Under the pieces are notes generated by a model. That model made no database searches and was not told where the DNA came from. It saw only the letters and a program-made list of their open reading frames with translations. DNA of 63,966 bases, filler included, from Pelomyxa schiedti (taxonomy: Eukaryota > Protista > Evosea): assembly GCA_020536535.1 (NCBI GenBank). It is 11 parts of 11 records of this genome, joined end to end, with 100 filler letters (N's around TTAATTAATTAA, not from the genome) between each part and the next. Parts side by side here need not be neighbours in the genome. Positions count along the whole stretch, not along the records: positions 11,427 to 41,723 come from JAHLWZ010000042.1; 10 more parts are not named here. One strand, 5' to 3'. Positions 1,098-41,723 of the stretch are shown in pieces. Both the position numbers and the translations under genes were made by a program. Each line of letters starts with the position of its first letter. Position 1 is the first letter of the stretch.

Positions 1098-1118
1098 NNN
1101 NNNNNNNNNNNNNNNNNG

Positions 1119-17210: not shown

Positions 17211-17276
17211 TCAACTATGTTCGCTCTCACTCTCACTCTCGCTCCCACTCCGGCTGCGGCTTCGGCTTCTGCTTCT

Positions 17277-17314
<38 letters not shown>

Positions 17315-20300
17315 TTCGGCTACGGCTTCGGCTTCTGCTTCTGCTCCGGCTCCGGCTCCGGCTTCGGCTACGGCTTCGGCTTCGGCTTCGGCTCCTGTCG
17401 CTGTCGCTGCTGCTACCGCGCTCTCTCTCGTGGTCGTGCTCACTGGCAACAGACCCTGACACGTTCCACTGATACAGAGAGCATCCCACATGCACATAGA
17501 ACGGCTCCTCACACTCTTCACAGCCGTAGTAAGATTCAGTGAGGGGTTTGTGGCAGCGATTGCATTTCTTGTGCCGTGTCAGGTCACTGTCTTTTGGCTC
17601 TGTGAGTGTCATACTGTACCCGTGCATCGCCAGCTTCAACGAATCGGGCAGCTTGTGCGCCCCTTTTAGTTCCGAAGGCAAGAAATCATGTGCAGAGCGG
17701 CCATGAATCTTTAACTGTCTCTCGGAATGATATACCCAGCCAGTTGGTCTGTATAGACCGTGAAAATTGGGGGCCTCAGCATACACCAGCTGAAGTGGTA
17801 TTTCAAGCCCATGAAACATACTCCAGGAAAATATTTTATTGGGTGGAGCCTGAACCTGCCGGTATTTCCGGTACTGCTTGATGCGAACTTGGTATGCACA
17901 TTTTTGGCAGTGATATTCTGGAGTTGAAGTCTTTCGGTCTAACAACTGGAGTGGGTGCTCATGATATTGGTACAAAATCCATTCAGGCAATTCACGGCGA
18001 CTACCGGTGCACATCGGATGAAAGTCTTGATTATCAATATGGCAGTGGTAAGCCCATCCTGATCCATTGAGTGAACATTTTGCACAAACAAAGACAGGGG
18101 TTTCCTGCAACTCCAGGAGGTGTTCATGTAACTCAAACATAACCCACCTGACGCATTCAACAGACCAGGGAAATTCAAGTAGGGGGAAATCATTGATGAG
18201 ACTAGAAACTGAGTGCTTGGAAACAATCTCCCCTTGTTGACTCAGGATCACTAATGTGGGTTCGGCTGCATATGTGCCATGTTAGGGAGGAAAGGAAACA
18301 ACTAAAAGAAGAATACCTGCAGTGACATCAAACATGTCTATGAGAGTCTCCTCCAGTTCCCTTTCCTCAAAGGGAAGACGCAACCAGGCATAAGTTTCTC
18401 GTCCCTTGGTGTTGAGTACTTTTGTAGAGTGATTACAGGAAATTTCAATCAGGAGAAAGTTGCTCTTTTGTTCTCCTGTGAGAGCACCATATTTTTTTGT
18501 AAGCTCTGCAGTGCACAGTTTGGTCCTTGGATTTGAATAGTTTGAAAAGAACAGTCCGAAGTACTTATAACTTTGTTTAATGTAGACAACCTTTGAAAGC
18601 AGTATGCTGAGTTGTGCCAGAACCATATTTGCGTCCAGTTTCCTGTCGTATTTGCTTGCCCCAATCACAGCCCGGGATTTCAACAGAAGTTTTTTTTCCA
18701 CACCCAGACCTTTGACTTTTTGTACATTTGCCTGAGTAGCAACAAGAGGTTGGGTGGTGTGACCAAATCGCTGCACTAAGGTGACCACAATTCCACCATC
18801 AGCCTTTCTTTCCACGCGGAGGAAGTGAGTTTCCCTGCCGGCAACAACTACAAGTAAATTGTCCCCAGCAGCATTCAATGAGAATATGCGTCCGGCAAAT
18901 GGACCAAATGTGAGCAGGGACTTCATTGGGGGTCTCAAAGACCACAGTAAAATTGTAGACTGCGTTGTGGCAACAGCAGCAATTTCAGTAGCCAACAACA
19001 GGCACCAGGGTCCACCATTCACACTGGTACCCAGCTTTTGAGATTGTACACCCCCTTGCTCAGGTGCTTCCAGCAACAAAGCGTCAACATCATCGTTGTC
19101 AAGGCCACTGGAGGACCTCTTTTCCGCCAGGTAAATGCTCATATTGACATCGTTAATGTAGAAAGTGTCACCGATCACGTGAAACTGAATTCTTTCCTCA
19201 CTACTAGGAACACGCTCATGTATTACTTGCAAGTCCCCCCTAAGAAAGTCAAAAGCTCCACCAGTATATTTGAAATATTCAGAGACCTGTTCTGAGAAAC
19301 AGAAAGCTGGTGGGAAAGCGAGAGGGGTAAATGGCCCAACAGTGAGTTTGAGGAGGTCAAGGTCAATCATTACCAGTATGTCACTATCAGTATTCCAGAT
19401 AAACACTGTTCTCCAGGTCGGTGACGCGACCACTGTGCTCCAATCCACACTTTTCAGTGGAAGATCTATGGGGTTCTCTGGGATCAACTTGGTTGGTTGC
19501 GCATAAGCATTTAAAACACAAAATAGGTTTTGAGGGTCCTCGCGATCGACGATTTTGTCAATCAAAATGCCTGGGAGACCTGCAGCGCCAGTCGAAGGGT
19601 TTTCTGCTGCTTTCGTCAGGGCAACGCCCAAAGGAGTAGTAATGGAATCTTCCCTACTGGGGAAGAAGGACCATGCCTTGCATTCATAGCCAGAGGCTGT
19701 GTTACTTTTGGCCATGTCCCCACTCTCCAAGTCCCACACAAACACAGTGGTGGGATCACATCCAGCCAAAAACCTCCCATTAGAAGACAAGCAGCAACGC
19801 TTTTTGAACTTGTTTGCTTTGGATTGAAAATCCTTTGGGAGTGGCAATCTTTTGAGGCCATCAGTTGACCACATCTCGCACACCAATATGGACTTAGCTA
19901 TTTTTTTAACTGTCCGTTCTCCTGCTGGTTCACAACCCTCAGATGTATCACTTCTGGCAGCAGAACTTGTATCCAACTCGCATTCATCTGGCATGATCTG
20001 TCTCTTTGTAGCAATCAACACTTTAGATTTGCAAGTTGATATACAGCGGCAAGGCCAACTCTCAGTGGCCTGCATGCTCCCAGAAACTTTGACTTCATAA
20101 ACCCGTGAGTCTCCCAGGTACCCAATGGTATCTTCCCCTGTGAAGAAGCTCTGCTGTGCTACGTAACAGTGAATACTTTGTGACTGGACGTGCATCAGCT
20201 GTGTACCAGCCAGCAGCCAAGTGCTTTTTGGAGAGAATGAGAGGGCAGTAATGTCACTTGGGTAGTTGACTTGGTTCTCAAAGAGCACACTCAAAGATGA

Positions 20301-23300
20301 CAAGTCTTTGTTAAAAAGGTCCCAAACAGTAAGCCTGCCTGATTGCTGAGAGAACCCAGCCAATTTATCCCTTGCTGGGGATATTGCAAACAAGGAAATA
20401 TCAGGCCCAAGGTTGGTTGCAGGGTGTGGTGAGCAAATCAGGTTCCCTGTAGTTTCTGCTGGGGACATCTCAAAGAAGGTGGATGTCCGAGACACAGTTC
20501 CCAACAGAGATGACTTGATGAAGAAATGACCAAGACACCCAATAATGGAAAACGATGGTTCAAGGACTGTTCTTGTTTCTCGTGATGAAGAAGGCTTGGG
20601 GGAAGGAAGAGAAAAAATATCTGTTTCACAAACCTCGGTTCCTTCCACCTCCTTTGATATTGCAAGAATAGTGGCATCCCCAGAGAAACATATATTTTTA
20701 ATACTACAGACTGGTGTTCCTCCAGTGGGTTTTGGGAATCTAAGATTGAGAGTGGTATTTGTGGGGATGTCCAAAACCAGAAGAGGAATATCTCCACTGA
20801 CAACCAGGCATATCTTTTCTCCATTTGGAGAGAATTTAGATTGGCTGCCCTGTACTTTAGGACCAATTTCAAGTAGTTCTTGGTCCTCTGAAGTGAGATA
20901 ACATAATAATGGGGAGGCTTTGTTGTGTGGGCAAGCACACAACCGCTTTCCATCTACAGTCACATCAACACAAGCAAGCCTCACACCAAAATCAAAGACA
21001 ACCCTCTCATTAAAGGTCACGCCTGTCATGTTAGCATATGACAGGTCGGCTCCGCATATCCACACCTGTGGCATTTTGCAGTCACTGAGGTCAGCCTTCC
21101 CCAGGTTGGCGGCTCCAAATATGCCACCCGTGAGGTCAGCACCGTTGATGTGAATGTACCGCAAATCAGCATTTGAGAAGTTGTGTTTGCCCTTGACCAG
21201 TAGCATCATTGCTGTGGTGGCAGCCCTGTCAGCTCTATGTGATTCAGTCGCGCCTGCCGCGTCACGGCTTGTCCTCTTGGAGTTCTCAATGAGGAGAAGG
21301 AGTGCCTTTCGTAGACTGAATGTGTCTTTATTATTGCCATGTTGTGCTTGAACAGATTCATCCCTAAACATCATCTCCAGCAAAAAGCTTACAACATCAG
21401 GAACTTTGACAAGAGTGGACTGATTAAGAACAAGATCACAGGGAGATTTCACAACCTTTGTTCTTTGTTCATTCTCTTTGGCAGCTTGCATTTTCCTCAG
21501 CCGTCGTCGAAGGTGAATCACAACACCCAGACTTGGCCTGAAGTTGCTTTTGGTTATTGTGCTTTCAATCTCTTCTTTTTCTTCATCTAGTCCAAGTAGT
21601 TTAGTGACAAGTGCACAATGGAGGACTGTAGCGGAAGCCTCTTTCGCGCTCTGCCTCTGTGATTCCATGATATGCAGAATATCTTCAGTTACTTTGTCCT
21701 TGTCAATCATGCAGTGCTGATGGCAGTGAGCCTCCTGGATTTTTGTAATGAGGTCAGCAAGATGCCTCCTTCCATTTGTGACGGAGAGTATTTTATCCAG
21801 TAGCTCCCTAAGTCTCTCAAAATTTTTCTCTCCTAACCAAGAAACAGAGGTATGTGTCAGTGCCTCACTGACAATTTCGCACTTAGGATCCAAGTCCAGA
21901 GCACACTTATTGCACAGGTTGAAGTTGCATATGTAACAATGCCAACCATCATCTTTAGGATTCCCACAGCAACCTACCTTTCGACAGGAATCACACTGCC
22001 AGTGATACAAACGTGCCTTCTTCCAGTCAAGGTGAAATGGGGCAAGGTGTTCCAGCGTGTGCTTATGGACAACAACATTGGCAAGTTCCAGAGGAGGAAG
22101 GCGCATTGCAAGGAGTTCCCTCTTGTGCTCCTGGAAGACCTTCCACATTTCTGCAAAGTCACTTTCATTATCAGCGATAAGTGGACCAATCATGGTTTTG
22201 AAAAACTTAGTGGGTTCATCATCTTTTCCACTTGACAAACGACTGGGCTGATATTTGGCACTTATTTCCTCAATAATTGCACATACAAATTGATGTGTAG
22301 GGCTATGATAGCGCCTCTGTGTGAGCTTAATTGTCTCCCTGCACTTCACTTTGGGGAAGTTTGAAAACGGCATGCTGACACAGAGCTGTACCTCCTTGTA
22401 AATCTTGTAGGCAATGAAATATTCCTGAAGGGACTTGTGCAAGAACATGAAAGTGTTGCCACCCTTTCTCTGGATTGGGCAGCCAGAGAGCACCAGCTGC
22501 GTGCTCCGATTCGTTGGGCTGAAGAACCTCTCAAGTGGGTTGGTTTGGTCAATCACCTCGACACCCTGGCTGTTTGTGGTCCAAACAGGACTGTACTGGA
22601 CCGCTGTCACCCCCTTGCCAAACATGAAGATGGAAAGATTCTCAGAGAAGGTTCTGAAGTCCTCAACGATGTCCCCACCAACCTGGAAGTTGAACTTGAC
22701 TTGCTCCGCATCGTCGGTAATGTGCTGTGCTGTGGTGCATTGGGCCATCCTCTCAGGTGTGATTTTGGACTTTTGCCTCTGGAACCACTGTTCCACAAAC
22801 CTGTCATAAAGCTCAAGCCTCGTCAGTTTGCTGTCATCAAACCTCCTCTTCGTTTTATCCGGCTCCAGCCGGTCAACAAGTGTTGGGAGAATCTCCATGA
22901 ACATCTTTAATATCAGTGGGGTCCTCACTAGATCCTCTACCCCTTTCAGAAGTTCCTTGTGCTGATAGAACAGTTCTGCACTCCATTCACCTCCAAACTG
23001 AGCATACTTCTTGACATATGCCTTTATCTTCTGCCGAGTGAAGGGCTCAATGTACCAACACAGCACCTCTGGAGCTGCTTCCGCCTCAGCGATACCTCCC
23101 CATTCAGCTGATGGCTGTGTCTGCACCCCCTTTTTCATTGACTTCCCAATTTTTCCCTGAGCACCAGGGAGGCAACAGAAGTTTTGGAAGTAATCTGACC
23201 CGATTTTCTCAGGCCTGCTGGATACCAGCACCTGTGCATACCTCCATTCCTCGAGTTTGTTTGCCCGACAGATGTTGACACCAACCTCGAGGGTGACTTC

Positions 23301-26105
23301 GTCATATCCATCAAGAATGAACAGGACCCGCTTGCTTGCCTTGATTTCATCAATGTTGTTCTGGGAGAACCCAAGCCCAACGAAAGTCTTCTCGAAAATG
23401 TTTTTTCCTGGATTCTTGATGGTTGCGAGTGAGATGAACATTGGGATCACCTTGCAACTCTCATAGGACTCCCACAGAACCTTCTCCAAGAAGTGCCCAA
23501 ACGTGGACTTTCCTGTTCCACCAGACCCAACAAGCACCAGAGTCTTGGTTGAAGGGAAAGGCACCGCTGAAGTGGAGGACAGTGCGGTTGTTGAGGAGGA
23601 TGTGTGGGAGCTGCCACATTGTGCAGCTGTCATATTGAGTTCAAGATTCAAGAATTTCCGGAGCAGAATCTCCTTCAACGGCTGTGCCACTTTGTCAAGG
23701 GTACTCTCCCGGCAATCAGGTTCAACATATGTCTTGAACAGAGTTTCAAGCTGTGGATCTTCCAATGTACGATTCCTGAGGTCCATAACTTGATCATCAA
23801 CCGAGTCATTGAGGGTTGTCAAAATCTCGGCCTTGGATTTGATGAATAGCTCGGCAGTGCTCAAAGTCTCTTCCACTGGTGTGGTCTGTGGCTTTGTCAG
23901 TGGGAGCAACATCTTGAACTGTAAAATCGGGTGGATGTTGGCAATATCTCCAGGTGCCAAGGGGCCAGCAGGGACTGGATTTTTTCGCATGTAAATGAGG
24001 AAGTTAGTTTTAAAAGGATTCAGGAGCCCAATGGCCTCAGCAGAGAAATTTGCCTTGCTCAAATTCAGCTTGTCATCAAAGCAAGAGATGACATCGGCTG
24101 TCGGTTGTTCCTTCTGAGTCTGCAGAGGGGGAAGAGTTGAAATGTCAATGAAATCTGGCGCTCCAGAGGGCCTGGGCACCACATACAACCAGAGCTCCTG
24201 ATTGGAGATGTAAGCCAGAGTTGGTCGGACCATTTCGGGAGTGGCTCTGTCCAACTTACGTCTCTGTGGGAAACTGGCAGTTCCAAAGTTGATCCTGTGT
24301 TTGAGGTCTCTGTTTCTCTGGCTTTTTGCCTCTTCTCCCTGAATGAACTTCATCACTTCACCCAAAATTTGCCATGCAGTGTTTCCAATTGGAGCCGGCA
24401 TCGTGGAATATTCTCGCAGTTTTCTGATGACCACCATCATCAGCCCGACTTCCGAGTTGAAGAAATTCATCAGTGCACTGTCACGGTGATCTTCTCCAAT
24501 CAGAATTCCCTTGAGCTGAGCCAGTGCCCATTTTTTCATCTCAATATTCTCAGGTGGCTCTGATCTGATCACGTTGTCAAGGAGATTGACATATCCCAGG
24601 CTGAAATCATGCTCTCCTTCCAACACTGCATTGAGTTGGCCTTTGAGCTCAACAGCTTTCCTTTTTCTCCTCTCTGCGACATTGGAAACTCCCTCCTTTG
24701 GATCCAGCAAATCAAGTTTTTCGGCTGTGGCACCAGAGGTGGCTTTGGAATGAGAAGCTGCTTTCTCTTCCTCTGCTGCCAAGTCGGCGTCCTTGCTCAA
24801 AGAATCAGCGTGACGGAGACCGAATTTCCTGGACTCAGAGTATATCTGTTGAATGGTGTCCTTCAGTCTCTCCTGTTCCTCCGGTTCCAACGCTTTCATC
24901 TCCTTCGCGCCGACAGTGAGCTGCCAGAGCATCAAGTCAATGAAAAACAGCAAGTCCATCCACAATTCATTGTGAATGTCAGCGAAGCACTCCTTGAGCT
25001 CGGAGAAGTAGTTGAATACCTCTCGTGTATCGTATTGCATGGCAATATTGGCCATCGCACCGACTGCCATGTATGCATGCCCGAGTCGAACAACAACTTC
25101 CTTCAGAGGATAGCCGTTGTCTTGAATTCGTTGTACATTCTGCTTGGCAACTTCTGCCTCGGCGGCGACGTAACACTCGAGGCTCTTGTAGTTGGCGTAT
25201 CTGTCTTTCAGAGCCTGAAGTGTTCCAAGTGACTTCTTCTTGATCTGTTCACTAAGGCCCTTGACACCTGATGCCCACATCGCACGGAGAAACTTATTGA
25301 CAACCCTGAGTATCTGGAACACCCTCTCTGCACTTTGCTGCTGTGCCTGCAAAATCTCGAGCTTCCCAATGAGCATCCGATAAGTCGAAACCAGGTCTTC
25401 AACTGGAATGTGACGGGAAGAGCACTGGAACAGAACCTCAGCCAGGCCCTCAATCATAGGCACATCAAAGAACGTGTTCTGGTCGATTGTGTTGACAAGT
25501 CCCGACACGAGCATCTGAACCACTTCGCTGTCGTCAACCCTTGCAAGCTGCACGATTTCATCGATCAGGGCAGGAGTCTTGCTCGGCGTTGACATGAAGT
25601 TGTCGATCATCTTGATTGCCAGGCTCTGAAGAACCCGTTGACCGGCTTTGTCCGTGAAAATGAGAGGGCACCTGAAGTGGCGGTCTGCATCGGCGTCGTC
25701 CAGAGTGGCTTTTGAGCCTTGAATTGCCACAGAAGTCGACTCTGGAAGGTACTCTGAGCAGAACGCCTTTGTGGAATCTGCGATTCTTTGGAGCAGTCTT
25801 CTTCCCTGGGGCGCCCTTTCTGCAGTTGCAACAGGTGATGCACCTGTTGTCAACTTGTGCTGAGGAGTCATGAAAGTCTGGAGCTTCTCCAATCTGTCCC
25901 TCACGAGCGCTTCCTTGTCGTAGGAGAGCATCGCCACGAGTTGAGCTCCAGTGTTTACGTTTTGAACTCGCTTTGCGCGAGACTCCTGAAGCGCAACTGG
26001 AACTGCCGTGCTGGGCATGGCCTGTGCGCTCTCATCATTGTGGGATGATGTGGATTCACTGGTGTGATGATTACGATGACTCGAGGCGTCGGCTGTGGGC
26101 ATCAT
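17211..26105 (-). CDS. Giant NLR-like STAND protein (about 2950 aa): ARM-like, NACHT NTPase, DC1-like insert, pentapeptide repeats, degenerate WD40/propeller, DC1 zinc fingers, RS tail
   Basis: Walker A GSGGTGKST (about 23502-23528), Walker B ILDGYDE (about 23300-23320), VSSRPE, TPLILK, FLHKSLQEYF, ADLRYIHINGADLTGGIFGAANLGKADLSD. A predicted 51-nt intron at 18266-18316 joins ORF 18282-26183 in frame to ORF 17211-18251. First ATG is 26105. Confidence 0.88.
17246..17400 (-). repeat. Hexanucleotide repeat encoding an (RS)n tract
   Basis: Minus-strand AGC-(CGA/CGG/CGT/AGA) units. The variation is synonymous only in the Ser-Arg frame. Confidence 0.85.
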
Positions 26106-26303
26106 CGTTTTGCTTCTCTTTGGTTGTTCTTTGAAACGACAACTCTGTGATCGGACCAACTTTTTCTCACTCTTTCGTAACAAGTTTCTCGAAAAAACAA
26201 TCTCGGGATTTCGCTTTAGTGGGATGTAAACACAACAAATGGAATACGTAAGTTGTAGGTGGGAACGTTTGGGAGAGAGCTGACCATGAGTGATATTGAG
26301 TCA

Positions 26304-26470
26304 TGTTGTACAACACACAGCTCCAACGCACCCGACATACGGTTTTTTCGGCCAGAGGCAGGAATCGCACCGATTTCGCCAAAGCAGATTATGTTGGGTC
26401 TGTGGACCCACAATTAGTCATCATCACCTCAGCAGGAGAGTGACAAAGTTGGTTTTGGGCATGAAGGACT
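26304..26470 (-). pseudogene. Orphan upstream region and first codons of a TRIM-like paralog (MSGALELC..., ATG 26338)
   Basis: Shares CCTTCATGCCCAAAACCAACTTT, TAATCTGCT.TGGCGAAAT and AAAAAACCGTATGTCGGGT.CGTTGGAGCTGTG with 28695-28810. Homology ends near 26304. Confidence 0.75.
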
Positions 26471-26502
26471 TTTACACAGTGTTTTGGCTTTTTTTTTGTT
26501 CG

Positions 26503-27037
26503 TTAATTGGTTGTGACTGTGAGCAGACCATAAATCTCGAATCCAGCTATCAAGAGGTAGTTGCAGTTACTTGAGTCGAGACCAGTCATCACCACACGAA
26601 ACACACTGAACGACGAGGTTGGAGTGGGTGGAGCAGCATCCCACGACCCAACTCCATGTGATCCAACTATTGTCTTGTCATTTGAATGCCTCGTGATGGT
26701 TGTCCATGTTGTGCCGTCGTTTGATCCCCTCAGCTCCCAGTTCCGAATGTAGTCACTGTCGTTGCCGTCGTGCCTGATTGAGTACTTTGACGGCCTCACT
26801 GACCCGCCACATGGTCTCAGGTCCACCTGCCACCAACTGTTCGCCACGTTGGTGGTGTTGTTGCCGCCGTTGTGGTCACGTTCGAGTGCGTTCTGTGGTG
26901 CCCCTTCGTTGGAACAGGACCACGAGGCGATGACGAGGCCCGAGTTGTGGGGGTTGACATAATTGGGAGTGTGGTTGCCGGGGTTGTGCCTTGGATCGGG
27001 AGTGGTTCCCAACCACCACATGACACCTTGATGGTCC
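26503..27037 (-). CDS. C-terminal discoidin/F5-8C-like (HECTD1-type galactose-binding fold) exon of a TRIM-like paralog; 5' part in gap
   Basis: GVMWWLGT...NSWWQVDL...PSKYSIRH...IRNWELRGSNDG..WTTITRH...FRVVMTG...IAGFEIYG. About 90% aa identity to 28855-29373. Confidence 0.8.
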
Positions 27038-27137
27038 NNNNNNNNNNNNNNNNNNNNNNNNNNNNNNNNNNNNNNNNNNNNNNNNNNNNNNNNNNNNNNN
27101 NNNNNNNNNNNNNNNNNNNNNNNNNNNNNNNNNNNNN

Positions 27138-28727
27138 GGTCCCAAGCCACCACATGATTCCTTGTTGGTCCCAGTTGCTGCTGAATGTGAACTCACGTGT
27201 GACAACTGGCGGTCAATTGTTAGTTAGGGCTGAAATAACCAAAATAAAAATACAGAGTGACACTGACTCGGGAGGACAAAAGAAAAACATAGTACACAGA
27301 CACACTGACATACTGATTGGAGTCGAGAGAGTAGCGAATGGGGAGCTCCTTCCGTGGATTCCGTTCGATTCTGCCCTCACGCTCACCATGTATGTGGTTC
27401 CCATTGACAGGCCTCCAACTGTGATCCTGGGGTCACTCCCGCAATGGAGCTCCTGTTGCTCTTGTTGTTGTTTCCTGGACACAAAAACAGTGTATCCTGT
27501 CAGGATGGCTGCCTTTGTTGGTGGAGGATCCCATGAGAGAATGAGGGACGTTGCTGTTGATTGGCACAAGCGTGGCTGCCCCGGTCTCCCAATCGCTTCC
27601 TCTATTTTGTGGTTTGTTTTTATGTTTCATGGCGGCGAGTCGGCGATACCCACCAGGAGGGAGAATGACACCCAGTGATGATATTGCTTTAAGGCATGCG
27701 GTTTTGTCAAGAATTGTGAAAACTCCATCATTTTCGCACGGCCGGAGCTTCTCTGAGTTGTACAGAGCACCCTCTACTATCTTTGTTTTGATTTGTGAGT
27801 TGTGGGGTTTTTGTTGAAGAGTAAACAAACCAACCTGCAGTGTTTCTGAGGACTGTTTTCGAGCTCTCATCACAGATTCGTTCGAGGAAGAGTTCATGGC
27901 AGCCAATGAATATGAGCAAGCACCCTCAAGACGTTCGGAGATTGTTGTCAACACGGATTTCTGTTGATTCAGTCTTTCAACTGGAGTTATAATGATTTGT
28001 TGGCACAATCATCTTTAGGTTATCTTTCACCTGTTTTTGCACAAATATTTGAAGACTGTTGGTTCAGTAAGTCAATCCTGTTTCTCAAGAGATTCTGCAA
28101 CTCTGCTCCAACCTTGTTCACTTCCGCCTGAAATGGGGCACGTTTCTGATAGTTGTGGGTAACAAAGAAATTGAGACTTAAAGATTTTGAGAAAGTGTGC
28201 CATTCAACCTGTTCAACAGATGCAATGAGGTTCTCCAGCTGTTGCACTGCCACATCAACCTTGCTCTTTTGGTCGAGGCACCTCTTGGACAAAGCTGCAA
28301 TCTGGTCTGTAGATGCCACAGAGTCGGAACCTAGGGGCCTGTTGGTCTCCATAGTTCCTTTCCACACTGTGATACTGCCACCTGTGTAACGGCCGAGCAC
28401 TTGGCGCACTTCACTTCAACTGTGTCTGGAAGCTGCAGACGAAAACTCACCTGGGTAACACAGAGTGACCAAAAAAAAAAAACATCGAACGTAGAACGCA
28501 CAGCTGCTTCATCACTTCCCTGTTTCAACAGTGCCAAAGAATACTGCTTTGCCACGCAACTTACAACACATTCGCGACAAATCCGGTCTCCACACTTCAT
28601 TGAGTCAGTCCGTGAAGTGAAAAAACAGATGCAAAAAAACGAAGGGAACAGGCAAACGGACCACAGGAGGATCCTTGAAATCACAGAGACAACATGTTGT
28701 ACAGCACAGCTCCAACGTACCCGACAT
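27138..28727 (-). pseudogene. TRIM-like paralog lacking B-boxes (RING, coiled coil, FN3, start of discoidin domain), apparent frameshift
   Basis: MSGTLELCCTTC..CGDRICREC..VKCAKC. The reading frame shifts near 28350 relative to the paralog (ETNR lies in another frame). Coiled coil and FN3 (LSWDPP..GYTV..YMVSVRAES) follow. Confidence 0.6.
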
Positions 28728-31646: not shown

Positions 31647-32224
31647 GCAAAAAATAACAGAAAAACAACGAAAAACAACAAGTCGAATTTGGCGTTAGAA
31701 AGTTTTAGCGATCCGGAGCGGAAAGCCATGGCCGCTTAGAGAGAGAATAGGGAACAATAGAGTAGAGAGAAAAGAGGGTGATTTTACGTGCCCTTGTGAG
31801 ACATGAGGAGGTTTGTAGGCCGTTTCAGAACCCACATCCAGCAGACCTAAATCACACCCACCCAAACCGGACCAGATCGGCGAAAGTTCTATCATCAGTC
31901 GCAGTGACACACACTGGACAGAACTATCCTAAAGGATTAGAAGTTATAGAAATAAGAGAGAACACTTTTGTTCGCTTGCCGACTTTCGTTTCGGACATCT
32001 ACGAGGGCTTGTCTTACAGGTTTAGTCTCGAAATCATCTTTGAGAGGAAAACGGGTCGATTCGAGTAGATTTTTGTGCCGTGATGGTGCCTCGCTTTGTT
32101 TTGGTTTTTTCCACTTTGAGTTTTAATCTCGACTGGCAACTGTAAGGTTGAAAGAAAACAATTGGATAAGTCACAATGTGAGGGTTTTCCCTGCATGATG
32201 GGGGTTCCATACAACTCTGAAATT

Positions 32225-32988
32225 TTAGAACTTTTTATGCTTTTTGTGCACGTGTTTGGTGACGGAAATCTAGACTGGGTGTTAAACGAACGTCTCCAGG
32301 AAGCAACATACCTCATCATCTACAAGCTTGTAAGAATAAGTTGTCAGTACAGTGCCTTCAACTGAAAGAACCATAAAAGTTGGTACAGCGTCCCTAGTTT
32401 ATTTGACTCTACAATTTAATAGGGTTTTTCTACCTGTTCGTTTCATTGGAAGTGCCAGTAGCAGTACCGGGGTTTAGGAACAGTTTTCCACTCTTCTCAA
32501 TTAAATGCGTTTGTGTATGTCCTTTGCGGTTTCAGTAAAAAAACGAAATATTGAACAGCAAGCAGAATTGGACAGAAACCTGTTATTACAACATCAGAGT
32601 CTGTCATCCTCTGTATATACTCCAAAGCCTCAGTGCCCCTATATTCGTCCTGGTGAGCATGGCAAATGCCAACTGTGAATTTCTCAATATCCACAACTTT
32701 GACGTCCGGGTAACCACTTTGCAGCTACTTGACACTTAATTCCACCACAAAAAGAAATCAAGATAAAAAACAAAAAAAGAGGAAAAGTACATCGTCGCAG
32801 TCACCTCCAACAATGTCTACACGCTCTGCGAGAGTTCGAAAATACTCCTCTACTTCTTTCGAGCACAGATTGCCAGTGCATATCACCCATTGCATTTTAT
32901 TGGGAGTCAAAAGATCCAGGAACTTCTTGGGCAACGACGCAGCTCGCGTCGGAATGTAAAGGTCTCCAATGACCAACACCAACACCAT
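32225..32988 (-). CDS. VPS29: Retromer subunit VPS29 (metallophosphoesterase fold)
   Basis: MVLVLVIGDLYIPTRAASLPKKFLDLLTPNKMQWVICTGNLC, ICHAHQ, LFLNPGTATG, PTFMVL, TYSYKLVDDE. Confidence 0.87.
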
Positions 32989-33164
32989 CGTTTCGGCAGT
33001 TAAAATTATTGATCTCGAGGATAACGGTTCGGTTCCAGTGTTGAGGTCGAGTTGGCGTCCAACCATAAGGCCACGTACACTGCAATCGGACTCGAACTCT
33101 TGAGCAGTTTTTTGCTTGAGACCCTCACAGATAGTTGAGATTGTAAATTATTACAGCAAGGAAG

Positions 33165-36100
33165 ATGGCTCACGATGGTACGAGGAGGGCGGTGTTACAG
33201 GGCGAGGAAGGGCAACCCATAATGGAGACCTGTGCCGCCGGCGCCCCTCCGTCGACGCCGCCGCACCACACGCCGCAACAGCAAGGGACGACACAGGACA
33301 GCTCCGCCGACTACGACGACAACGACGGCGGGACCATGGACCGCGGGGAACAAGGCGGCTCCGACGAGGACAGCGACTGCGTGATCGTCGGCGTCGCGGT
33401 TCCCCTGCCCGCCCCGGGCGACGGCGACGCCGACGAAGCAGACGATGAGGCGGACGGCGCCGCGCCAACCGCAGGCGGCGGCATAAGAAGATCGAGGGGG
33501 CGCAGGAGGCCCGGGGCACATGTTAAAAGGGAGCCGCGGGAGGAGGACGTGGAGCGGGAGAACCAGGGCAGCGGGGAGGAAGAGGAAGCCGAAGAAAGCG
33601 AGGTGGCGGCGGGGGAGGGGGAGGCAGAAGCAGAGGGAGAGGGAGAGGGGGGGAAGGAGCCCAGCGAGGAGGAACAGGGGGACGAGCAGGGAATACAGCG
33701 GGACGAGGATGACGGTACTGGCGGTGGTGACCAAGCGGAGACAGAGGTGATCGAGGTGGACGACGACGACGCCGGTGTCGGTGGTGGTGATAATGGCGAC
33801 GAGGAGGGAGCGAATGGCTGTGATGAGGATGAGGATGGGGATGGGGATGGGGATGACGGAGTGGCGAAAATCGATTGTGGGAATGGAGAGGATGATGATA
33901 CCACGGGAACGGGAACGAGAGGAAGGGGTGACGATGACGGAGAGAACGATGACTATGAAGATCAAAGGAAACACCGGACCGAAAAGAGGAGAAGAACCCC
34001 TGAGAAGCCGTCGAATGAAGGTTCTGGCCCTTGCTCTACATCCACTACTGCGTCCACTTGCATAAGGAACCAGAAAAATAAACCGGTGGAAGAGGAATCT
34101 GGCATTACAAAACTTTTGGCACTTTTTGATCAAGAGAGGGAGAAAAATGAGATGAAATTACTGCTAAAGGAAGTTGTCAAATTAAAGCAGAAGCTCAAAA
34201 TGAAGAAATTGGAAGAGAAAAAGAAAGTTTGTTCATGTGGTCATGCTACAACATGTGCATTAGAATCACAGTCCGTTCATAATGAGACATCCACTTCCCA
34301 CAAAAAGCCAAACCGCACAGCTTTCACACTTGAAGAAGATCTTTGCATTCTCAAGTTCGTTGAAGACAACCCAAACATGGGGACTCGAGGAAATGCAATG
34401 TGGAGACAGCTTGCAACTCAAGTTTATTTTTTATCTTTTGTCCTTTTTCCCTACTCCCACTGATATTGTATTTTGTCTTGTCGATTGTCATATGACTTGT
34501 TTTGTGGTTCCATCTTTTTTTTTTTTGTTCAGTCTGCCTCAGGTTACCACACATACATGGCAGAGCTTGCGTAGTCGCTATTTGCACATTAAGGACAAAA
34601 CAGAAGCGGATTTGAGGAAAGATCATACCCCAATTGCAAAGCTCCCCAACTGTTTAAATATGAGACCAATAGAGTCATTCCTTCATGATCCTCAGAATTC
34701 ATCTATACAAGATAGGAACTCATTTTTCCCAACAAATCAACATTTTCTGCATACCCCTGCTATCGACGTCGATGATTCGTGTTTTCCCAATGTACCTTCG
34801 GCCCCACCCTCACCTACCACAGCAACATCTTCAGTGCGAACTCAAACTCCAGTACGTGCTCACCTTTTCCCAGGTCAATCTCAAATGTCACATCCCTATC
34901 CACAGTTGCCTGTGAGCCAACAGCATCCACTATACCACATTGCACAGTGTGACCGACGCACTGCCCCAACGCCAGTACTTCAGCCCCAAATGCAATCAAC
35001 CAAACCTCAAAATATGGATGCACCACAACTTCATTTATCACGTCCCCCAGAAATACCACTATCACAGCAGCAGGTGGCAGTGGACCCTCAGCCTCCACCA
35101 GTACCTCAATTACAACCTCCACCGCCACTCCATCCACCATCACAGGTGCAGTCGCCGCCGTACCCACGGCCTGCATCACAACAGCAGTCCCCGATACAAG
35201 GGTCACCACAACCTCAGCCACCCCCAATGCAACAACAACAAGCACAGTTGCTGTCACGACCTCCACAGTCCCAACCATACTTACAACCCGTACCACAATT
35301 ACAGCAACCACCTCAACTGCCACGGTTGTTGCAACCCTCATCACAGCCGCAACAAACGCCACAGACTGAACCACTGCCACAAATAGAGCGACAACACAAG
35401 ACACATATATCACAACAACTTCCGCAACCCCGAACACATCTAGAACAACAATCACGGCCACCGCAACCAGCAGAGCCACAACAAATTGATTTACCCCTCA
35501 CCTCTCCAGAGACAGTTCAATACATTCCTTCTAATCCACACCTACCGTCACTACTACAAGAGCCTGTTGCACAACAGCCAGAGCCTATTTCTTCAACAAC
35601 ATCATGTACAAATACCTACTCCCAGACTGAAACTTCAAATTTACCCAAATCTGTACATAAGGGACGAACACAGCAAAACCAAATTACTCCCTTGAAAAGC
35701 AAAGAAATTCCGCAACCAAAGCCACCAAAGCTCACAAATCCCAACAAATCCTCTGCAACCAAAAGGCCGGCTACACAAACGACAGCTGCAGCAGTAGGTA
35801 TTGTCACATCCCCTGGCAAAGTCAAGTCAGAGCAGGCTACTACACACAGCCGAAGTTCGGGTTTTACATCCAATGCCCTGAGCCAAGTCATCAACGGCAC
35901 GGACAAGGATTTAAAAGAAGTTGCAGGGGCACTTCTGGCAACCGGTTCAGTGCATGGAGCAATAACATTACTGAATGGAGAAGGTTTCCTTTCACTCCCC
36001 TACCTACCACTTGAAACTAACCGGCCCCAACAGACCCTGGTGTAAAAGTATGGAAATCTTCCGAGAACGTATGTTCTAATTTTCTTTCCCCCTTCCGTTT

Positions 36101-36289
36101 TTCACGCACTGAACTCTCCTAATACAGAGGGCCCTGCTCAAGAGAGACCTACCTCGAAGTGAAGAAATTTTCAAAGCTGTGGGTGTTGCTGCATTCCGTG
36201 CACGGCTTGACTTCCTCAGAATTCCAGTCAAAGATTTCCCGTTCCTGCAGGACCAAGTACCCCCAGCAGAAGTCATCTCATTACTTTAG
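33165..36289 (+). CDS. RAP1: RAP1/TERF2IP-like protein (Rap1-type Myb domain plus RCT-like C-terminus)
   Basis: RTAFTLEEDLCILKFV..RGNAMWRQLATQ|VTTHTWQSLRSRYL. C-terminal ALLATGSVHGAITLL..VWKSSE|..ALL...GVAAFRARLDFL. Long acidic and Q/P-rich linkers. Confidence 0.72.
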
Positions 36290-36573
36290 TGCACAACAAC
36301 CCAACCTGGGGTTTTTTTTCTCAAGCACTGTTCTGTGCCGAAGGACTGTACAATTGGCAAAAAAAGAGTTAAACAACTCTAATCTGAGTTGGCACTAATT
36401 ACCTGCACATCATTTATAAGCTTTTGCTGGCCACACCAGTCAATATTCAAATAAAAAAGATAGAAGTTCTTGTGGAGTATGTTTTTTTGCTTGTAGTCCC
36501 TTGCCACCATCACATCTGATGGCTCAAGGGAACTGGCAATCCATCCTCCTATTTATGAATTCCCAAACGAACG

Positions 36574-37869
36574 ATGGCTGGCGCTTCAGCCCCTCTGAAC
36601 AGGGTAGACGTGTGCAGCCCGCTTACTCACGGAGATATTGACAGCAGAACGGTACCAGCATCCGCGACGGTTTGTGCGGTGACGTTGGACCAATCAATAG
36701 TATCTGCTCAACGGGTATGTATTTACCCTCTCCATAGCAAACAAACATTAGGGCACCCACTGCCCACGACACACTCCCCACTCCAACTAATTATTGTTGT
36801 AGGAATGTGCGTCGTTTATTGCTGAAGCGGACAATGTGGAGAGAAAATTACAGGCTCAACTGAGAACCAGAATCGAGCTGCTGAAAAAAGAAGCACAGAA
36901 TATTTGTACTGAGACAGGTTTCGTAGCATCTCATATAACGACAACCTAACTCACAAATACCTCATCTCCAGTTGAAAGACTCAATAGACAGAAATTCATA
37001 TCCGAAACACTTTCGGATCAAGATTCCTCCTGCATACAGTCTGCAATGAATTCTGCATTAGATTCTTATGGAAATGCTCAAAGCCAGAACATAGATTCAC
37101 TTCAAGTACACAAATATCTCCAACTCCTTTTAGTATTCACAGGAAAATCAGACACGGGACACAGAGAATCTCAAGGCGTGCGAGTACGGTTTATTACTCC
37201 TCAACAGCACTGCATGTCACCGCGCAATTTCATCTCTGAGTTGCGGTGTGAAAAAAGAAAATCATCCTCCATCATGTTTCTAAACCAAGAACAGGAGTCA
37301 CACGGGAATTCACATGCAACTGCAACTGGGACCGGCGAGGAATCATGTGGTGGTTGGGAACCACCCCGGACCCAAGGCATCACCCTTTACAACACACCCC
37401 GAATCACATCAACCCGCACACATCCGGCCTCGTCATCGCTTCATGGTCCGGAACATGCAGCGGTTCACCTCAAAGCACACTTGATCGCGACTGCAACATC
37501 CCCAATTACACTGCACACGAGCCGAACAGTTGGTGGCAGGTGGACCTGAGGCCATGTGGAGGATCAGTGAGACCATCAAAGTACTCAATCAGGCACAGCA
37601 GGAACACGGGCAACTTTTTGAGGAACTGGGAGCTGAGGGGATCAAACGACGGCACAGCTTGGACAACCCTCACAAGACACACAAACGATCAAACAATCAA
37701 CAGACCACTTGGAGTTGGCACATGGAATGTCCCCCAGACATCAACACCATCAACTGAACCATCGTTCAGTATCTTTCGTGTGATAATGACTGGACCCTGC
37801 TCAAGTGGCTGCCTTCACCTTGTAATTGCGGGCTTTGAAATTTATGGTTTGCTCACAATCGCGCTGTAA
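36574..37869 (+). CDS. TRIM-family paralog reduced to coiled coil plus discoidin-like domain (no RING, B-box or FN3 seen)
   Basis: VERLNRQKF..AMNS..LQ and ENLKACE..TACHRAISSL align with the coiled coil of the minus-strand copies. The last exon runs directly into VTREFT..GIMWWLGT...IAGFEIYG. Confidence 0.7.
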
Positions 37870-37923
37870 ATATAGCAGTAAAAAAATCAAATCGTCAAAA
37901 ACAACTCCTTTTATTCCTACATA

Positions 37924-39784
37924 TTACAGCCTTAGAGGATAGGGAAGACTGAAGTGGAATGCAAGTTCTATGATGAATTGAAGTGTAGGTAGTGGTATGA
38001 TGCTGAATACACCACCCTTCTTCCATGAGAGGAACAACGGCTTTAGTTGCCTGAAAGTAGGGAACCTTCCCTTGATGAAGAAGACAGTCTGGGCCTTTTC
38101 ACAATCCACAACATAAACATCACCTCTCGGCGTCATCCATAGACCCATTGGGGTTACAAGGGATGGGTGGGTGAAAAACTCGGTTGCTTTGGTGGCTGTT
38201 GTGTTTCAGTGAGGGGTTTGTGTGTCTTGAATTGGGATTTGTACCTCTGTTGAAAGACATAACAACGGAGTACTTTGGGTCGGTGAGGAAAAACATGTTT
38301 CCGGAGCTATCTACTTTGATTCCTGTGGGCAACATTGGATGGGAGTTGCATTCGAAGCGTGTTATGGTAGAGACCATTCCTGGAAAGATAGTTAGCTTAG
38401 TGAAAGTTCTTTATTGGTAAACCGTCTTTAATTCTCCTTATGCTTGATGAAATAGAATCGGCAACATAAATCGCCCCCGTCGAGTCAACGCAAACGCCGC
38501 GAGGAAGATTGAACTGAGCACTGGAGCACTCGCCATCCTGGGAGCCAGCCTTGCTGCTGCCAGCAATGGTTGTCACAGTGCCTTTTAGGAAGCTAAATCA
38601 GTAACAAAATGGAAACTGCCTCACAAGAGAGATACCATCCAGAGTAACTCTTCGTATTCTGTGATTTTCAGAATCAGACACTACAAGTGTCCTAGTCGAC
38701 TTGTCAAATACAATTCCCCACGGGCCTCTGAATAATGCCTTGGGGCCTCTCCCATCAGCATAGCCACCCGAAGGTGAACCAGCAAGTACAGTCACATTCC
38801 CTTTTTAAATATCCTCAGAAACAAAAAAACCCCAGCGAAGCACAAATCAAAATAGACACATGAACACCAACTCAGCAACCAAGTATTTGACTTGACACAT
38901 AACCTACAAGGCACACACACTGCCCACACACCTTCCATAGACACTCTCCTTACACGGGACGATCCCTGCTCCGTCACATAAACAATCCCCTCAGGGTCCA
39001 CAGCCAAAGCAATGGGGTTCCAGAAGGACGCGTCGTGCGGGCCGCCGTCCGACGTCCCCTCCATGGCCCCGACCGCGGCGCCGACGCCGCCCCACCGCGT
39101 CGCGGTCATCTCGCCCCCGCGCATGGACGCCCGCATGGCCTCGGTCAGCATCACCGGGCCCATCCACAGCACCGCGTGCATCGCCCAGTCGACCACCAGC
39201 ACGCGGCCGGGCTGCCCCTGGTCCGCGCCTCCGCCGCCGCCGCCGCCGCCGCCGGGGCCGCGCGGCTCGTCCAGGCACAGGTCGTAGGGCTGCACCAGGC
39301 ACGTGGGGCTGTAGTACCTGTGGAACACGTGGGGCGCCGCCGACATGACGTAGTCGACCTGGCGCCCGCCGCGCCGCATGGGCTCCCTGTCGGCGCCGTC
39401 GTCGTCGTCGTCGATCTCCATGCTGGACCCCGAGTGGTCCGCCGCGGCGCCGCCCCACGTAGTCACCACCGGCGCCGTGGGTGTTATTGTGGCGGCGACG
39501 GAAGTACTAGCAGTTGTGGTGGTGGTTGCTGATGCTGCTGCTGTTGATGGAGGTGGTGTGGATGCTGCCGGGGCCGAGGGGGAGGCCAGGGTCTCGATGA
39601 CGTGGACGGAGCCGTCGTCGGCCGTCACGGTCACGGTGGCTGTCGGGGGCGGGGACGGCGTCCGCTTGCGTGGGGACGTCTTGCTGGCCGGGGGCGGCGA
39701 CGGCGTGCGGTTGCGCGGCGACGTCTTGCCCGACGACGAGGTCGGCTTGGACGAGAACATGAACGCAGCGAGCCTGCCCCTCAT
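37924..39784 (-). CDS. NHL-repeat beta-propeller protein
   Basis: DGGPHDASFWNPIALAVDPEGIVYVTEQGSSRVRRV, LAGSPSGGYADGRGPKALFRGPWGIVFD, DSENHRIRRV, AQFNLPRGVCVD. Confidence 0.82.
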
Positions 39785-39916
39785 TTTTTTTTGTTCGACG
39801 ATGTCACTGTTCTAGAACTACAACAACGGTTTATGTTCCAAAAGAAACAACAAGTCAGTTTTTTTAGTGGAACTCGCTGAACGAACTTCAGGAGGGTTGT
39901 TGGGTGTACTGAAGGT

Positions 39917-40153
39917 TTAAAGTAGATGGTTGGTTGCTGGAGAGAGTCGTTCGGAGAGTTGTTCAAAATGTCCAGTCACTGTTTTGATGGTCGACAAGCA
40001 GGCTTGTGAAGTTAGTGGAAACGAGCAAATCAAAAAAAAAGTCTACCGGCTTTCGTCATCGCCAGTTCTCCCTTTGTGGTAGCAAGCTCTTCCTTTGTTC
40101 TTTCATGTGCCTCTTTTTCCTTTTGCAATTCGGTCCTAGTGTATTCCAACACG
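39917..40153 (-). CDS. 3' fragment of a coiled-coil protein (5' in gap)
   Basis: ELQKEKEAHERTKEELATTKGELAMTKA, intron, short last exon to TAA at 39917-39919. Confidence 0.4.
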
Positions 40154-40253
40154 NNNNNNNNNNNNNNNNNNNNNNNNNNNNNNNNNNNNNNNNNNNNNNN
40201 NNNNNNNNNNNNNNNNNNNNNNNNNNNNNNNNNNNNNNNNNNNNNNNNNNNNN

Positions 40254-41723
40254 CCTGGTTTCTGTGGGCCAATTTTAGTTCGATGACAATGAAGCAAGCA
40301 TCTCATTGCAAAAAAAAAAAAAAAAAAAGTTGATGAGCAATGAATAACAAACAACAGTCACACATAACACATACAACACAACACACTCACCGTTTGGGGT
40401 TGAGAGCGCCTTGAAGGGGGAGTTCCTTCCGTGGATTCCATTTGACTCTGCCCTCACACTCACCATGTATGTGGTTCCCTTCGTCAGCCCACCAACTGTG
40501 ATCCTGGGGTCACTCCCGCATTGGTGTTGTTGTTGCTGTTGTGCTTCTTCTTGTTGGTTGTTGTTGTGGTCGTGTTGTTCTTCCTGCTGTTGTTGCCTGG
40601 ACACAAACACTGTGTATCCTGTCACTCTGTTTATTGTTGCTTTTGTTGGTGGAGGAGCAGGAGGGTCCCAGGAGAGAGTGAGGGATGTTGGGCTCGCTTG
40701 GCATATCTTAGGTTGCCCTGGTGTACCGATTGCTTCTTCTGTCGGCATTATGTCAGTGTTTGTTTGGTGGAATGCAGTCTTTCTTTGATTGCATGGTGAG
40801 TGAACACACACCAGGAGGGAGAATGACACCCAGTGATGATATTGCTTCACGGCATGCTGTTTTGTCAAGGATTGTGAAAATTTCGTCACGTTCACACGGC
40901 TCGAGGTTCTCTGAATTGGATGAAACACGCTCCACTGTCTTTGTGTTTTGTGGGGTTGTGGTTTTTTGTTTCATTCAAGTGTAAAAAGCAACTTACCTGC
41001 AGTGTTTCTGAGGAATGTTTTTGGGCACTGATCACATAAACGTTGGAAGAAGAGTTCATTGCAGATAACGAACAGGAGGAAGCACCCTCAAGATGCTCAG
41101 AAATTGTTGTCAACATGGATTTCTGCCGATTCAGTCTTTCAACTGGACATTGTTGTGTGTTTTATTTTATTTTATTTTGTTTTGTTAGTTCGGAGCACCC
41201 ACCACCCTCTCTTTCAGTTTCAAACCTGTTTTTTCGCAAATATTCGAAGACTGTTGGTTCAGGAAGTCAATCCTGTTTCTCAAGAGATTCTGCAACTCTG
41301 CTCCAACCTTGTTCACTTCAGCTTGGAATGCTGTGTGTTTCTGACAATGGGTGGGTAATCAATGGTTTGTTTCCGGTTTGTGGAATATAAATGTTCAGGC
41401 TTCCAAAATGGCTTCAACCTGTGTGACAGATGCAATTACATTCTCCAACTGTTGCACTGCCACATCGACCTTGTTCTTTTGGTTCCGGCATCTCTTGGAC
41501 AAGTTTTGCAAGTCTGATTTGCTGGCAGCAATTTGGTCCGAAAGTTCAAGCAGTTTATGTCCCTGTATCACAACCAGTGGTGAGAGGTTTAAACAGCCAA
41601 AGAGTTTCACCTGATGTGAAGTGACCGCGCAGACGGAGCACATTAAGGTTGTGCAGTTCACACAGTACAACTCGATTTCTTTCTTGGGGTGTTTGGGACA
41701 ATTGCCTGTTTTGAGATTATGAT
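40254..41723 (-). CDS. TRIM-like paralog, partial (B-box2, coiled coil, FN3), both ends in gaps
   Basis: Near-identical to 29408-30910 including introns. Ends at the acceptor of the discoidin exon (CCCACAG|AAACCAGG). Confidence 0.8.

Follow-up and report, generated by a model that had tools for sequence, protein, structure and literature searches.

Expanded TRIM ligase families whose recognition domains evolve fast are regarded as an immune innovation of animals, and chiefly of vertebrates. The finTRIM-type families of animals are multi-copy and tandem, vary in their C-terminal loops and show ratios of replacement to silent substitution rates (dN/dS) around or above 1 (PMC2657112), and zebrafish provides a precedent for expanded NACHT (NLR-B30.2) and TRIM (finTRIM) families that exchange exons and co-localise (PMC4852459, PMC2657112). 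Amoebozoa have been cited as having a single TRIM37-like gene, and Dictyostelium reportedly has a TRIM37-like gene only (PMC5758549). We analyzed a window of 63,966 nucleotides (the whole joined stretch of DNA, filler included) from the archamoeba Pelomyxa schiedti, in which one piece, at positions 11427-41723, carries TRIM-like gene copies ending in a discoidin/CBM32-like domain (GBD) and, beside them, a giant NACHT gene. The account that we prefer, with a probability of about one half, is that of a tandemly expanding, loop-diversified family of TRIM-like ligases, next to which a separate NACHT switch has come to lie through duplication of the array.

An earlier reading made from the DNA letters, here called the sequence-only reading, had proposed a NACHT sensor plus ubiquitin-tagging module in a phagotrophic amoeba, and its author knew of no description of such a cluster. 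The host is indeed a phagotrophic amoeba of the Archamoebae, and the literature searched had nothing specific on TRIM or NACHT genes in Archamoebae. The TRIM-like family appears to be undescribed in that literature.

The TRIM-like family and its C-terminal domain

The piece is scaffold JAHLWZ010000042.1 of assembly GCA_020536535.1 (30,297 bp) and consists of four contigs (11427-12125, 12226-27037, 27138-40153 and 40254-41723). Its TRIM-like features, and the two assembly gaps that bear on them, are as follows.

28855-31646, minus strand: TRIM-like copy 2, intact, 680 amino acids; 11 exons, all GT-AG; RING (C3DC4), B-box1, B-box2, coiled coil, FN3 and GBD
27138-28726, minus strand: TRIM-like copy 1; RING exons, coiled coil, FN3 and the start of the GBD exon; both B-box exons gone
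40254-41723, minus strand: TRIM-like copy 3, partial, on its own 1.47-kb contig; B-box2, coiled coil and FN3
36574-37869, plus strand: TRIM-like copy 4 (Pelo_647, P0009, 352 amino acids); coiled-coil remnant and GBD only, without RING, B-box or FN3
26503-27037, minus strand: terminal discoidin/CBM32-like (GBD) exon, contiguous with the NACHT gene; 94.5% nucleotide identity to the copy 2 exon
26302-26391, minus strand: first-exon relic and upstream flank of a TRIM-like gene; 78% identical to 28693-28772 (copy 1 flank and first exon)
27038-27137, no strand: assembly gap 1, an RNA-seq scaffold join inside a discoidin-like exon; flanks homologous but non-identical
40154-40253, no strand: assembly gap 2; flanks from different genes

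Family members follow the order RING (C3DC4), B-box1, B-box2, predicted coiled coil, FN3 and CBM32/discoidin-like GBD. Several full genes of this kind had been claimed for the locus; one, copy 2, is demonstrably complete, and the public annotation places a 672-amino acid gene there. Its Pfam matches to B-box, fn3 and F5_F8_type_C all reach the cut-off, the B-box1 exon scores 25.7 bits (cut-off 24.1), and B-box2 reads CPKHPKKEIELYCVNC...HQGH. The RING is spread over exons 1-3 as C-x2-C-x12-C-x-D-x2-C-x2-C-x31-C-x2-C, with Asp replacing the canonical His at the fourth ligand, and this CGD variant is kept in the paralog P0011 and in the Mastigella protein P0077. The copy 2 protein is 59% identical to P0011 and 29.5% identical to a Mastigella protein.

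For P0011, the RING match (Pfam zf-C3HC4_4) stays at 23-25 bits, under the cut-off of 30, and the B-box reaches 41-47 bits. Its best PDB sequence matches are TRIM72, TRIM28, TRIM3, TRIM31, TRIM21, TRIM5 and MID1, with TRIM31, TRIM34, TRIM21 and TRIM5 among the RING matches, and its B-box-coiled-coil region aligns to the corresponding structures of TRIM72, TRIM28 and TRIM3 with E-values of 8e-10 to 8e-6. These matches argue that the family is truly of the RING-B-box-coiled-coil (RBCC) type, and the earlier description of the neighbours of the NACHT gene as TRIM-like agrees with them, as its discoidin call does with the C-terminal fold. No Pfam match to a COS box was obtained in the linker between coiled coil and FN3.

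The copy 2 GBD scores marginally above the cut-offs of PF00754 (30.3 bits versus 28.2) and PF22633 (30.3 bits versus 27.8). A HMMER scan placed the domain in a large subfamily of its own (2,964 proteins), often in tandem in giant proteins, with P. schiedti proteins, Pelo_647 among them, as its nearest relatives; among the best 150 of these 2,964 matches, architectures with a B-box were confined to Pelomyxa, Mastigella and one environmental cluster. An AlphaFold2 (AF2) model of the GBD, built from a 51-sequence alignment, reached a pLDDT of 97.4 and a pTM of 0.92. With this model, Foldseek retrieved 312 PDB matches at E <= 0.001, headed by galactose-binding CBM32 modules (TM ~0.58-0.77), with F-type lectins, SUN2, APC10/DOC and the muskelin discoidin domain as further matches. 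Model and matches together make the predicted discoidin/CBM32 beta-sandwich, or jelly-roll, fold a solid call.

Recent change in this domain is focused on loops. Four near-identical GBD exons (two in the window, two at locus L005) gave pairwise dN/dS values of 0.87-2.13; among them 30 codons vary in amino acid and 10 silently only. The variable patches comprise residues 52-55, 63-75, 102-107, 129-138 and 161-174. Between copy 2 and the exon adjacent to the NACHT gene, the replacements are clustered (permutation p = 0.004), with a replacement to silent ratio of ~21:3 inside the patches and 1:4 outside. Between copy 2 and the L005 gene, the GBD exon has diverged by 6.3% and the adjacent intron by 2.2%. 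The DSSP string of the model suggests that the five patches occupy alternate inter-strand loops, and hence one end or face of the jelly roll. Older comparisons indicate purifying selection (dN/dS 0.30 for B-box2-coiled-coil-FN3 in copy 2 versus copy 3, and 0.24-0.27 for the GBD of copy 4 versus copies 1 and 2).

The TRIM-like gene at L005 (Pelo_2659, 488-3052) is a mosaic, with 66-73% identity to copy 2 in the 5' part and ~90% in the 3' part (exon 9 to the GBD exon, introns included), which points to recombination or gene conversion among paralogs. The array had been called diversifying, and recent duplication, domain loss and the rapid change in the GBD loops bear this out.

Domain loss is seen in copies 1 and 4. 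Copy 1 lacks, relative to copy 2, ~500 bp that hold the B-boxes, and shares 68-70% nucleotide identity with copies 2 and 3. We considered it as a dead pseudogene and did not uphold this, as the homologous exons are all open and in-frame GT-AG paths bridge the B-box deletion; since canonical splicing would keep it in frame, copy 1 need not be a pseudogene. The pseudogenised copies of the sequence-only reading were an overstatement. The RING-less paralog of the sequence-only reading was recovered as copy 4, which has lost B-box and FN3 too. Copy 3 (93.9% nucleotide identity to copy 2) is truncated at the 5' end by the edge of the piece and has lost its GBD exon to gap 2. The upstream partner of the GBD exon at 26503-27037 is uncertain due to gap 1.

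In the whole, the family numbers at least nine copies or fragments on four scaffolds and one small contig. A word-indexed search with P0011 found itself and at least two others; in each such search 8,000 candidates were scored, with low-complexity words crowding, and counts of relatives are lower bounds. At locus L002 an LRR kinase stands between two TRIM-like copies, and L004 (JAHLWZ010000406.1) has one, near a STAT gene.

We also noted that this STAT gene (L004 17010-19587) is of the Dictyostelium type (STAT coil, Ig, EF-hand, SH2) and lies ~6 kb from the TRIM-like gene. Large LRR-kinase genes occur between the two TRIM-like genes of L002 (3599-9084) and just upstream of a NACHT paralog at locus L003 (1445-9033), a proximity that may be coincidental, LRR kinases being abundant in Amoebozoa.

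The giant NACHT gene

The giant NACHT protein proposed earlier is encoded by a main open reading frame (ORF) of 2,633 codons at 18282-26183, with its first ATG at 26105. An intron of 51 nt (18266-18316, GT-AG) splices this ORF in frame into another at 17211-18251, which extends the product to 2,947 amino acids; the join is convincing because the splice runs through the Trx_8-like domain. The parts of the gene are listed below.

17211-26105, minus strand: giant NACHT/STAND gene; exons 26105-18317 and 18265-17211, stop included; 2,947 amino acids
24978-25652, minus strand: ARM-like N-terminal repeat (ARM_5, ORF residues 178-402); PF23948, 55.4 bits versus a cut-off of 27
22413-23543, minus strand: NACHT module; Walker A GSGGTGKST, Walker B LFILDGYDE, SSRPE, TPLILKM and winged-helix FLHKSLQEYFIA
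21900-22067, minus strand: C1/DC1-like zinc finger; weak C1_2 match (E 0.057), Cys/His pattern kept in the paralog
21075-21182, minus strand: pentapeptide repeats; PF00805, 26.1 bits versus a cut-off of 20.2
18564-21026, minus strand: probable degenerate WD40 or beta-propeller region, assigned from faint WD40-family matches
18200-18566, minus strand: Thioredoxin_8-like (nucleoredoxin-type) domain, split by the intron; Pfam 20 bits here, 27.7 bits (at or above the cut-off) in the paralog
17396-18100, minus strand: DC1 (C1_2) zinc fingers; PF03107, 43.2 bits in two stretches (paralog: seven, 118 bits)
17248-17395, minus strand: Arg-Ser dipeptide repeat tail, from translation; tandem repeat of period 6 in 23.8 copies (hexamer microsatellite)

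The Pfam NACHT match (24.7 bits, E 2.4e-5) falls just under the cut-off of 26.7. The motifs of the NACHT clade are nevertheless all present (Walker A, Walker B, sensor-1 Arg and winged-helix FxHxSxQE(F/Y)) and conserved with homologs that do carry PF05729, and these motifs place the giant protein among the NACHT-clade STAND NTPases. NLRP2 and NLRP9, the top PDB sequence matches of the module, are weak ones (E 0.12-0.4), and an AF2 model from a 5-sequence alignment was unusable (pLDDT 43.7). The Pfam domain scan gave no LRR match, nor any death-fold, TIR, CC, HET or other familiar effector domain, and PADLOC returned no significant match for the protein. Without LRRs it is not an NLR in the strict sense, so that of the NLR-like STAND receptor announced earlier the STAND NTPase remains. 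Word-indexed searches found at least three distant homologs of the giant ORF and at least one Pelomyxa fragment of the NACHT region.

The ARM_5 region can also be aligned to Mortierellomycota homologs, and the C1-like finger appears to sit in a ~300-amino acid insertion between stretches that align to fungal homologs. A paralog on JAHLWZ010000381.1 (L003), with 51-61% amino acid identity, has the same architecture (Trx_8 27.7 bits, seven C1_2 stretches) and stronger WD40-type matches (WD40 24.3 bits, WDHD1-type 29 bits). Two or three NACHT genes were seen overall.

Further observations concern the NACHT genes themselves. Read by eye, the Trx_8-like domain seems to have NPRT at the place of the redox CxxC (WCPPC); catalysis has probably been lost, and the domain may instead act in binding. 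In combination with the DC1 fingers, it is reminiscent of nucleoredoxin. The L003 paralog has a frameshift between Walker A and Walker B (L003 12780-12840) and is annotated as two genes (917 and 2,488 amino acids), which would make it either a pseudogene or the victim of a sequencing error. Over its ~9 kb, the NACHT gene is interrupted by one 51-nt intron, and the paralog (L003 10136-20490) likewise consists of long uninterrupted ORFs; genes in this genome reportedly average 7.4 introns, and the 2.8 kb of TRIM-like copy 2 contain 10. This contrast between near-intronless NACHT genes and an intron-rich genome hints at a retrogene or horizontal origin of the NACHT family.

Adjacency, assembly and competing readings

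A single unbroken contig (12226-27037) carries the GBD exon at 26503-27037, the relic and the NACHT gene in full, co-oriented, with ~400 nt from exon to gene. The NACHT gene is downstream of the TRIM-like exon on the same (minus) strand, as had been stated; the contiguity with TRIM-like genes claimed along with it holds for this terminal exon, without a gap, and is overstated across gaps 1 and 2. The relic (90 nt, MSGALELC...), whose reading frames were checked on the sequence, lies in the 5' region of the NACHT gene. It forms an upstream ORF of 40 codons (MSGALELCVVQHD..., 26217-26339, minus strand) in another frame than the NACHT ORF and ending ~110 nt before the NACHT start; if transcribed, it could affect NACHT translation.

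A GBD exon followed by the NACHT 5' end was also found at L005, on a separately assembled contig, with 98.8% identity (328/332) to the window junction. At such identity L005 is an allele or a very recent duplicate rather than an independent locus. Its intergenic region is without the relic and has a ~60-nt segment in inverted orientation (L005 4088-4150 versus window 26385-26443), a difference that stems either from real structural variation or from an amplification chimera.

Elsewhere the two families are apart. No TRIM-like sequence occurs within 10 kb on either side of the L003 NACHT paralog, which lies among genes for a GHMP kinase, an LRR kinase, an EF-hand protein and a phosphodiesterase, and no NACHT sequence occurs at the TRIM-like loci L002 and L004 in stretches of 13-21 kb each. 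The NACHT-TRIM linkage is not conserved at the independent P. schiedti loci L002, L003 and L004, and L005 repeats the window junction. Were genes placed at random, the chance of a TRIM-like neighbour for any one NACHT gene would be ~0.1-1%; the adjacency is therefore nominally unusual, though picked post hoc. The simplest account of the arrangement would be a tandem array that duplicated up to and into the NACHT 5' flank.

The order of the contigs has to be read with the assembly in mind. The genome was obtained from seven micromanipulated cells, assembled with SPAdes in single-cell mode (k up to 121) and scaffolded with P_RNA_scaffolder, which joins contigs on RNA-seq read pairs (PMC8887013). 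The 100-N gaps are transcript-based joins inside a repeat family and therefore weak evidence of order. One gap, at 12126-12225 (window 12006-12347), is flanked by an exact 121-nt duplicate, the same as the SPAdes k-mer size; we take it for an artefact of an unmerged graph overlap, with continuous sequence and nothing missing. At gap 1 both flanks span the same ~36 nt of the discoidin exon (upstream NWDQQGIMWWLGT versus downstream DHQGVMWWLGT); the upstream flank is closest to copy 4 (86%) and the downstream exon to copy 2 (94.5%). The join is possibly chimeric, and continuity and frame across it are not established. L005 has another 100-N gap after which the contig begins at the identical base of the discoidin-like exon (GGACCATCAAGG; L005 3446-3560 versus window 27020-27140). 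The same break in two scaffolds points to a repeat boundary at which the assembler breaks contigs and the RNA-seq scaffolder then joins paralogous pieces. At gap 2 the upstream flank stops 8 nt into a discoidin-like exon, and the downstream flank is the last coiled-coil exon (tail) of a gene that is unrelated and has a paralog at the left edge of the piece; from their sequence, these flanks are not continuous.

On the reading that we prefer, and going by what is known of the family, the TRIM-like proteins would be cytosolic, would dimerise via the coiled coil, and would, by means of the RING, attach ubiquitin to the ligands of the GBD. Specificity would reside in the GBD, which has a framework that is near frozen and five loop patches that outpace silent sites and the neighbouring intron, a pattern to be expected of a recognition surface diversified by selection or by patchwise gene conversion. 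Its most likely use would be the cytosolic recognition of variable non-self or exposed ligands, glycans or proteins, as presented by ingested bacteria, endosymbionts or damaged vacuoles. The NACHT protein would be a separate switch driven by ATP, ARM-like at its N-terminus and with pentapeptide, WD-like, thioredoxin-like and DC1 parts at its C-terminus. Its gene would owe its position to duplication of the array as far as, and partly into, the NACHT 5' flank, which left the first-exon relic there, and no conserved functional pairing would be needed. Pelomyxa houses bacterial and archaeal endosymbionts (PMC10579272), and because of this host biology and the loop pattern an immune or symbiont-related role is a reasonable hypothesis; an immune role for the TRIM-like family seems plausible.

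In a bolder version, Archamoebae would, independently of the animal lineage, have evolved a germline-diversified set of cytosolic E3 ligases of the TRIM type; this set would read microbial or symbiont surface ligands via hypervariable lectin-fold loops, would police intracellular prokaryotes in Pelomyxa, and would at one locus be transcriptionally coupled to a NACHT switch via a duplicated TRIM promoter and first exon. As a whole, we consider it improbable.

Several points weigh against the preferred account. The fold of the GBD also binds proteins, in APC10, muskelin and SUN, so that the fold does not imply a glycan ligand. Definition of the loop patches was post hoc and the counts are small, and the same pattern could be obtained by patchwise gene conversion or by relaxed constraint on surface loops, without an immune role. 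The low chance probability of the adjacency leaves some room for a real NACHT-TRIM link. Finally, since cells from seven individuals were pooled, amplified and scaffolded by RNA-seq, allelic variants could be counted among the copies, and gaps 1 and 2 may have been joined wrongly.

The competing readings can be judged on the same evidence. The RBCC-FN3-GBD proteins could be cytoskeleton or trafficking E3 ligases like the class C-I TRIMs, whose RBCC-FN3 order they match, with loop variation from relaxed constraint and gene conversion, the NACHT protein a signalling or redox-linked regulator, and the adjacency accidental. The purifying selection between old GBD paralogs (dN/dS 0.24-0.27), the conversion or recombination apparent in the L005 mosaic (66-73% in the 5' part, 90% in the 3' part), the nucleoredoxin-like NACHT C-terminus and the ordinary neighbouring genes would all fit. 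We nonetheless regard this non-immune reading as unlikely, given the lack of a COS-box match and, in recent copies, loop codons that change at or above the silent rate in an exon more diverged than its intron; simple relaxation would not have left the framework so completely frozen.

The dedicated immune module, with a NACHT sensor and adjacent TRIM-like ligases as its co-regulated ubiquitin-tagging effectors, is distinctly improbable. In its favour, the genes share their orientation, ~400 nt separate them and the sequence from GBD exon to NACHT gene is gap-free, the NACHT 5' flank holds a duplicated TRIM-type upstream region and first exon and could share a TRIM-type promoter, the junction is seen twice, and the teleost finTRIM and NLR-B30.2 families are a precedent for TRIM-NLR interplay (PMC2657112, PMC4852459). 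Yet the 10 kb to either side of the NACHT paralog (51-61% identity) are free of TRIM-like genes, the stretches covered at L002 and L004 are free of NACHT sequence, the second junction is 98.8% identical and lacks the relic segment, and housekeeping genes are interspersed in the array. The argument for a sensor-plus-tagging module comes down to adjacency, and the module is not supported; a linked sensor-effector module would matter more if true. That mis-scaffolding or amplification chimeras in a repeat family have made neighbours of genes that are not is very improbable: although the assembly is a single-cell one with 100-N joins from RNA-seq pairs, contigs break at an identical GBD-exon base in two scaffolds, the flanks of gap 1 differ, those of gap 2 belong to unrelated genes and L005 has an inverted ~60-nt segment, the GBD exon, relic and NACHT gene share the single contig 12226-27037, copies 1, 2 and 4 share the single contig 27138-40153, and the junction from GBD to NACHT was assembled twice from non-identical sequence.

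As to the neighbours, the TRIM-like array is interrupted by a VPS29 gene and a Rap1-Myb gene between copies 2 and 4 and, after copy 4, by an NHL-repeat gene; on its far side, the NACHT gene adjoins a fucosyltransferase gene and a LanC-like gene. The NHL-repeat gene (38792-39784, minus strand) has a GC-rich (59%), low-complexity N-terminus with a 45-nt tandem repeat (39644-39729), and, having no RBCC part, it does not count as TRIM-NHL. We rejected the idea that the coiled-coil exon by gap 2 makes it TRIM-NHL, as that exon splices to a short tail ending at ~39925. Paralogous tails of one uncharacterised coiled-coil gene lie at both scaffold ends (11427-12460 and 39925-40153, both minus strand) and have a common exon-intron structure (...TKEG|gt... 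and ...TKAG|gt...), the 5' part of the right copy being lost in gap 2. An Rfam scan of the piece detected no RNA family.

Comparison with described systems

Like TRIM5alpha, TRIM21 and the teleost finTRIMs, the Pelomyxa proteins have the order RING, B-box1, B-box2 and (predicted) coiled coil, with significant matches to TRIM72, TRIM28, TRIM3 and TRIM21. They differ from animal TRIMs in having FN3 and a CBM32/discoidin-like domain instead of PRY-SPRY/B30.2, in the Asp of the RING, and in their amoebozoan host. With the class C-I TRIMs (MID1, TRIM9 and TRIM67: RBCC-COS-FN3-SPRY) they share the succession of RBCC, a single FN3 and a beta-sandwich recognition domain; unlike these, they are without a detected COS box, carry a GBD and not a SPRY domain, and are expanded and variable rather than conserved and single-copy.

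The logic may match that of FBXO2/Fbs1, FBXO27 and the galectin-8/TRIM16 axis, in that a cytosolic E3 ligase with a lectin-type fold could tag glycans on damaged vacuoles or bacteria. The folds and E3 classes are, however, unrelated, and sugar binding by the Pelomyxa proteins is putative, being suggested by fold matches to galactose- and fucose-binding modules.

For the NACHT protein, the best outside homologs among the matches listed come from Mortierella and Entomortierella (27-29% identity in the NACHT region), and by its domains it is architecturally closest to the ARM_5-NACHT-pentapeptide-WD40 proteins of Mortierellomycota. With these and with the fungal NACHT-WD40 proteins (NWD/HET-E) it shares the NACHT motifs, ARM_5, the pentapeptide repeats and a WD-type C-terminus. 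Unlike them, it has the ~300-amino acid insertion with a C1-like finger, a probably inactive Trx-like domain, DC1, an RS tail and a degenerate WD40 region, with no LRR, death-fold, TIR or HET. This unusual STAND architecture (ARM-like, pentapeptide/WD, nucleoredoxin-like/DC1) is added to a sparse record of protist NACHT proteins. In contrast to the zebrafish NLR-B30.2 and finTRIM families, the NACHT and TRIM-like proteins of Pelomyxa share no domain, two or three NACHT genes were seen, and the linkage is not conserved among paralogs.

The locus offers a concrete gene set for testing in an organism that eats bacteria and keeps prokaryotic endosymbionts (PMC10579272). Set beside the TRIM expansions of animals, a multi-copy RBCC family with fast-changing lectin-fold loops in a free-living anaerobic amoeba would be a case of convergent ligase-based recognition diversity.

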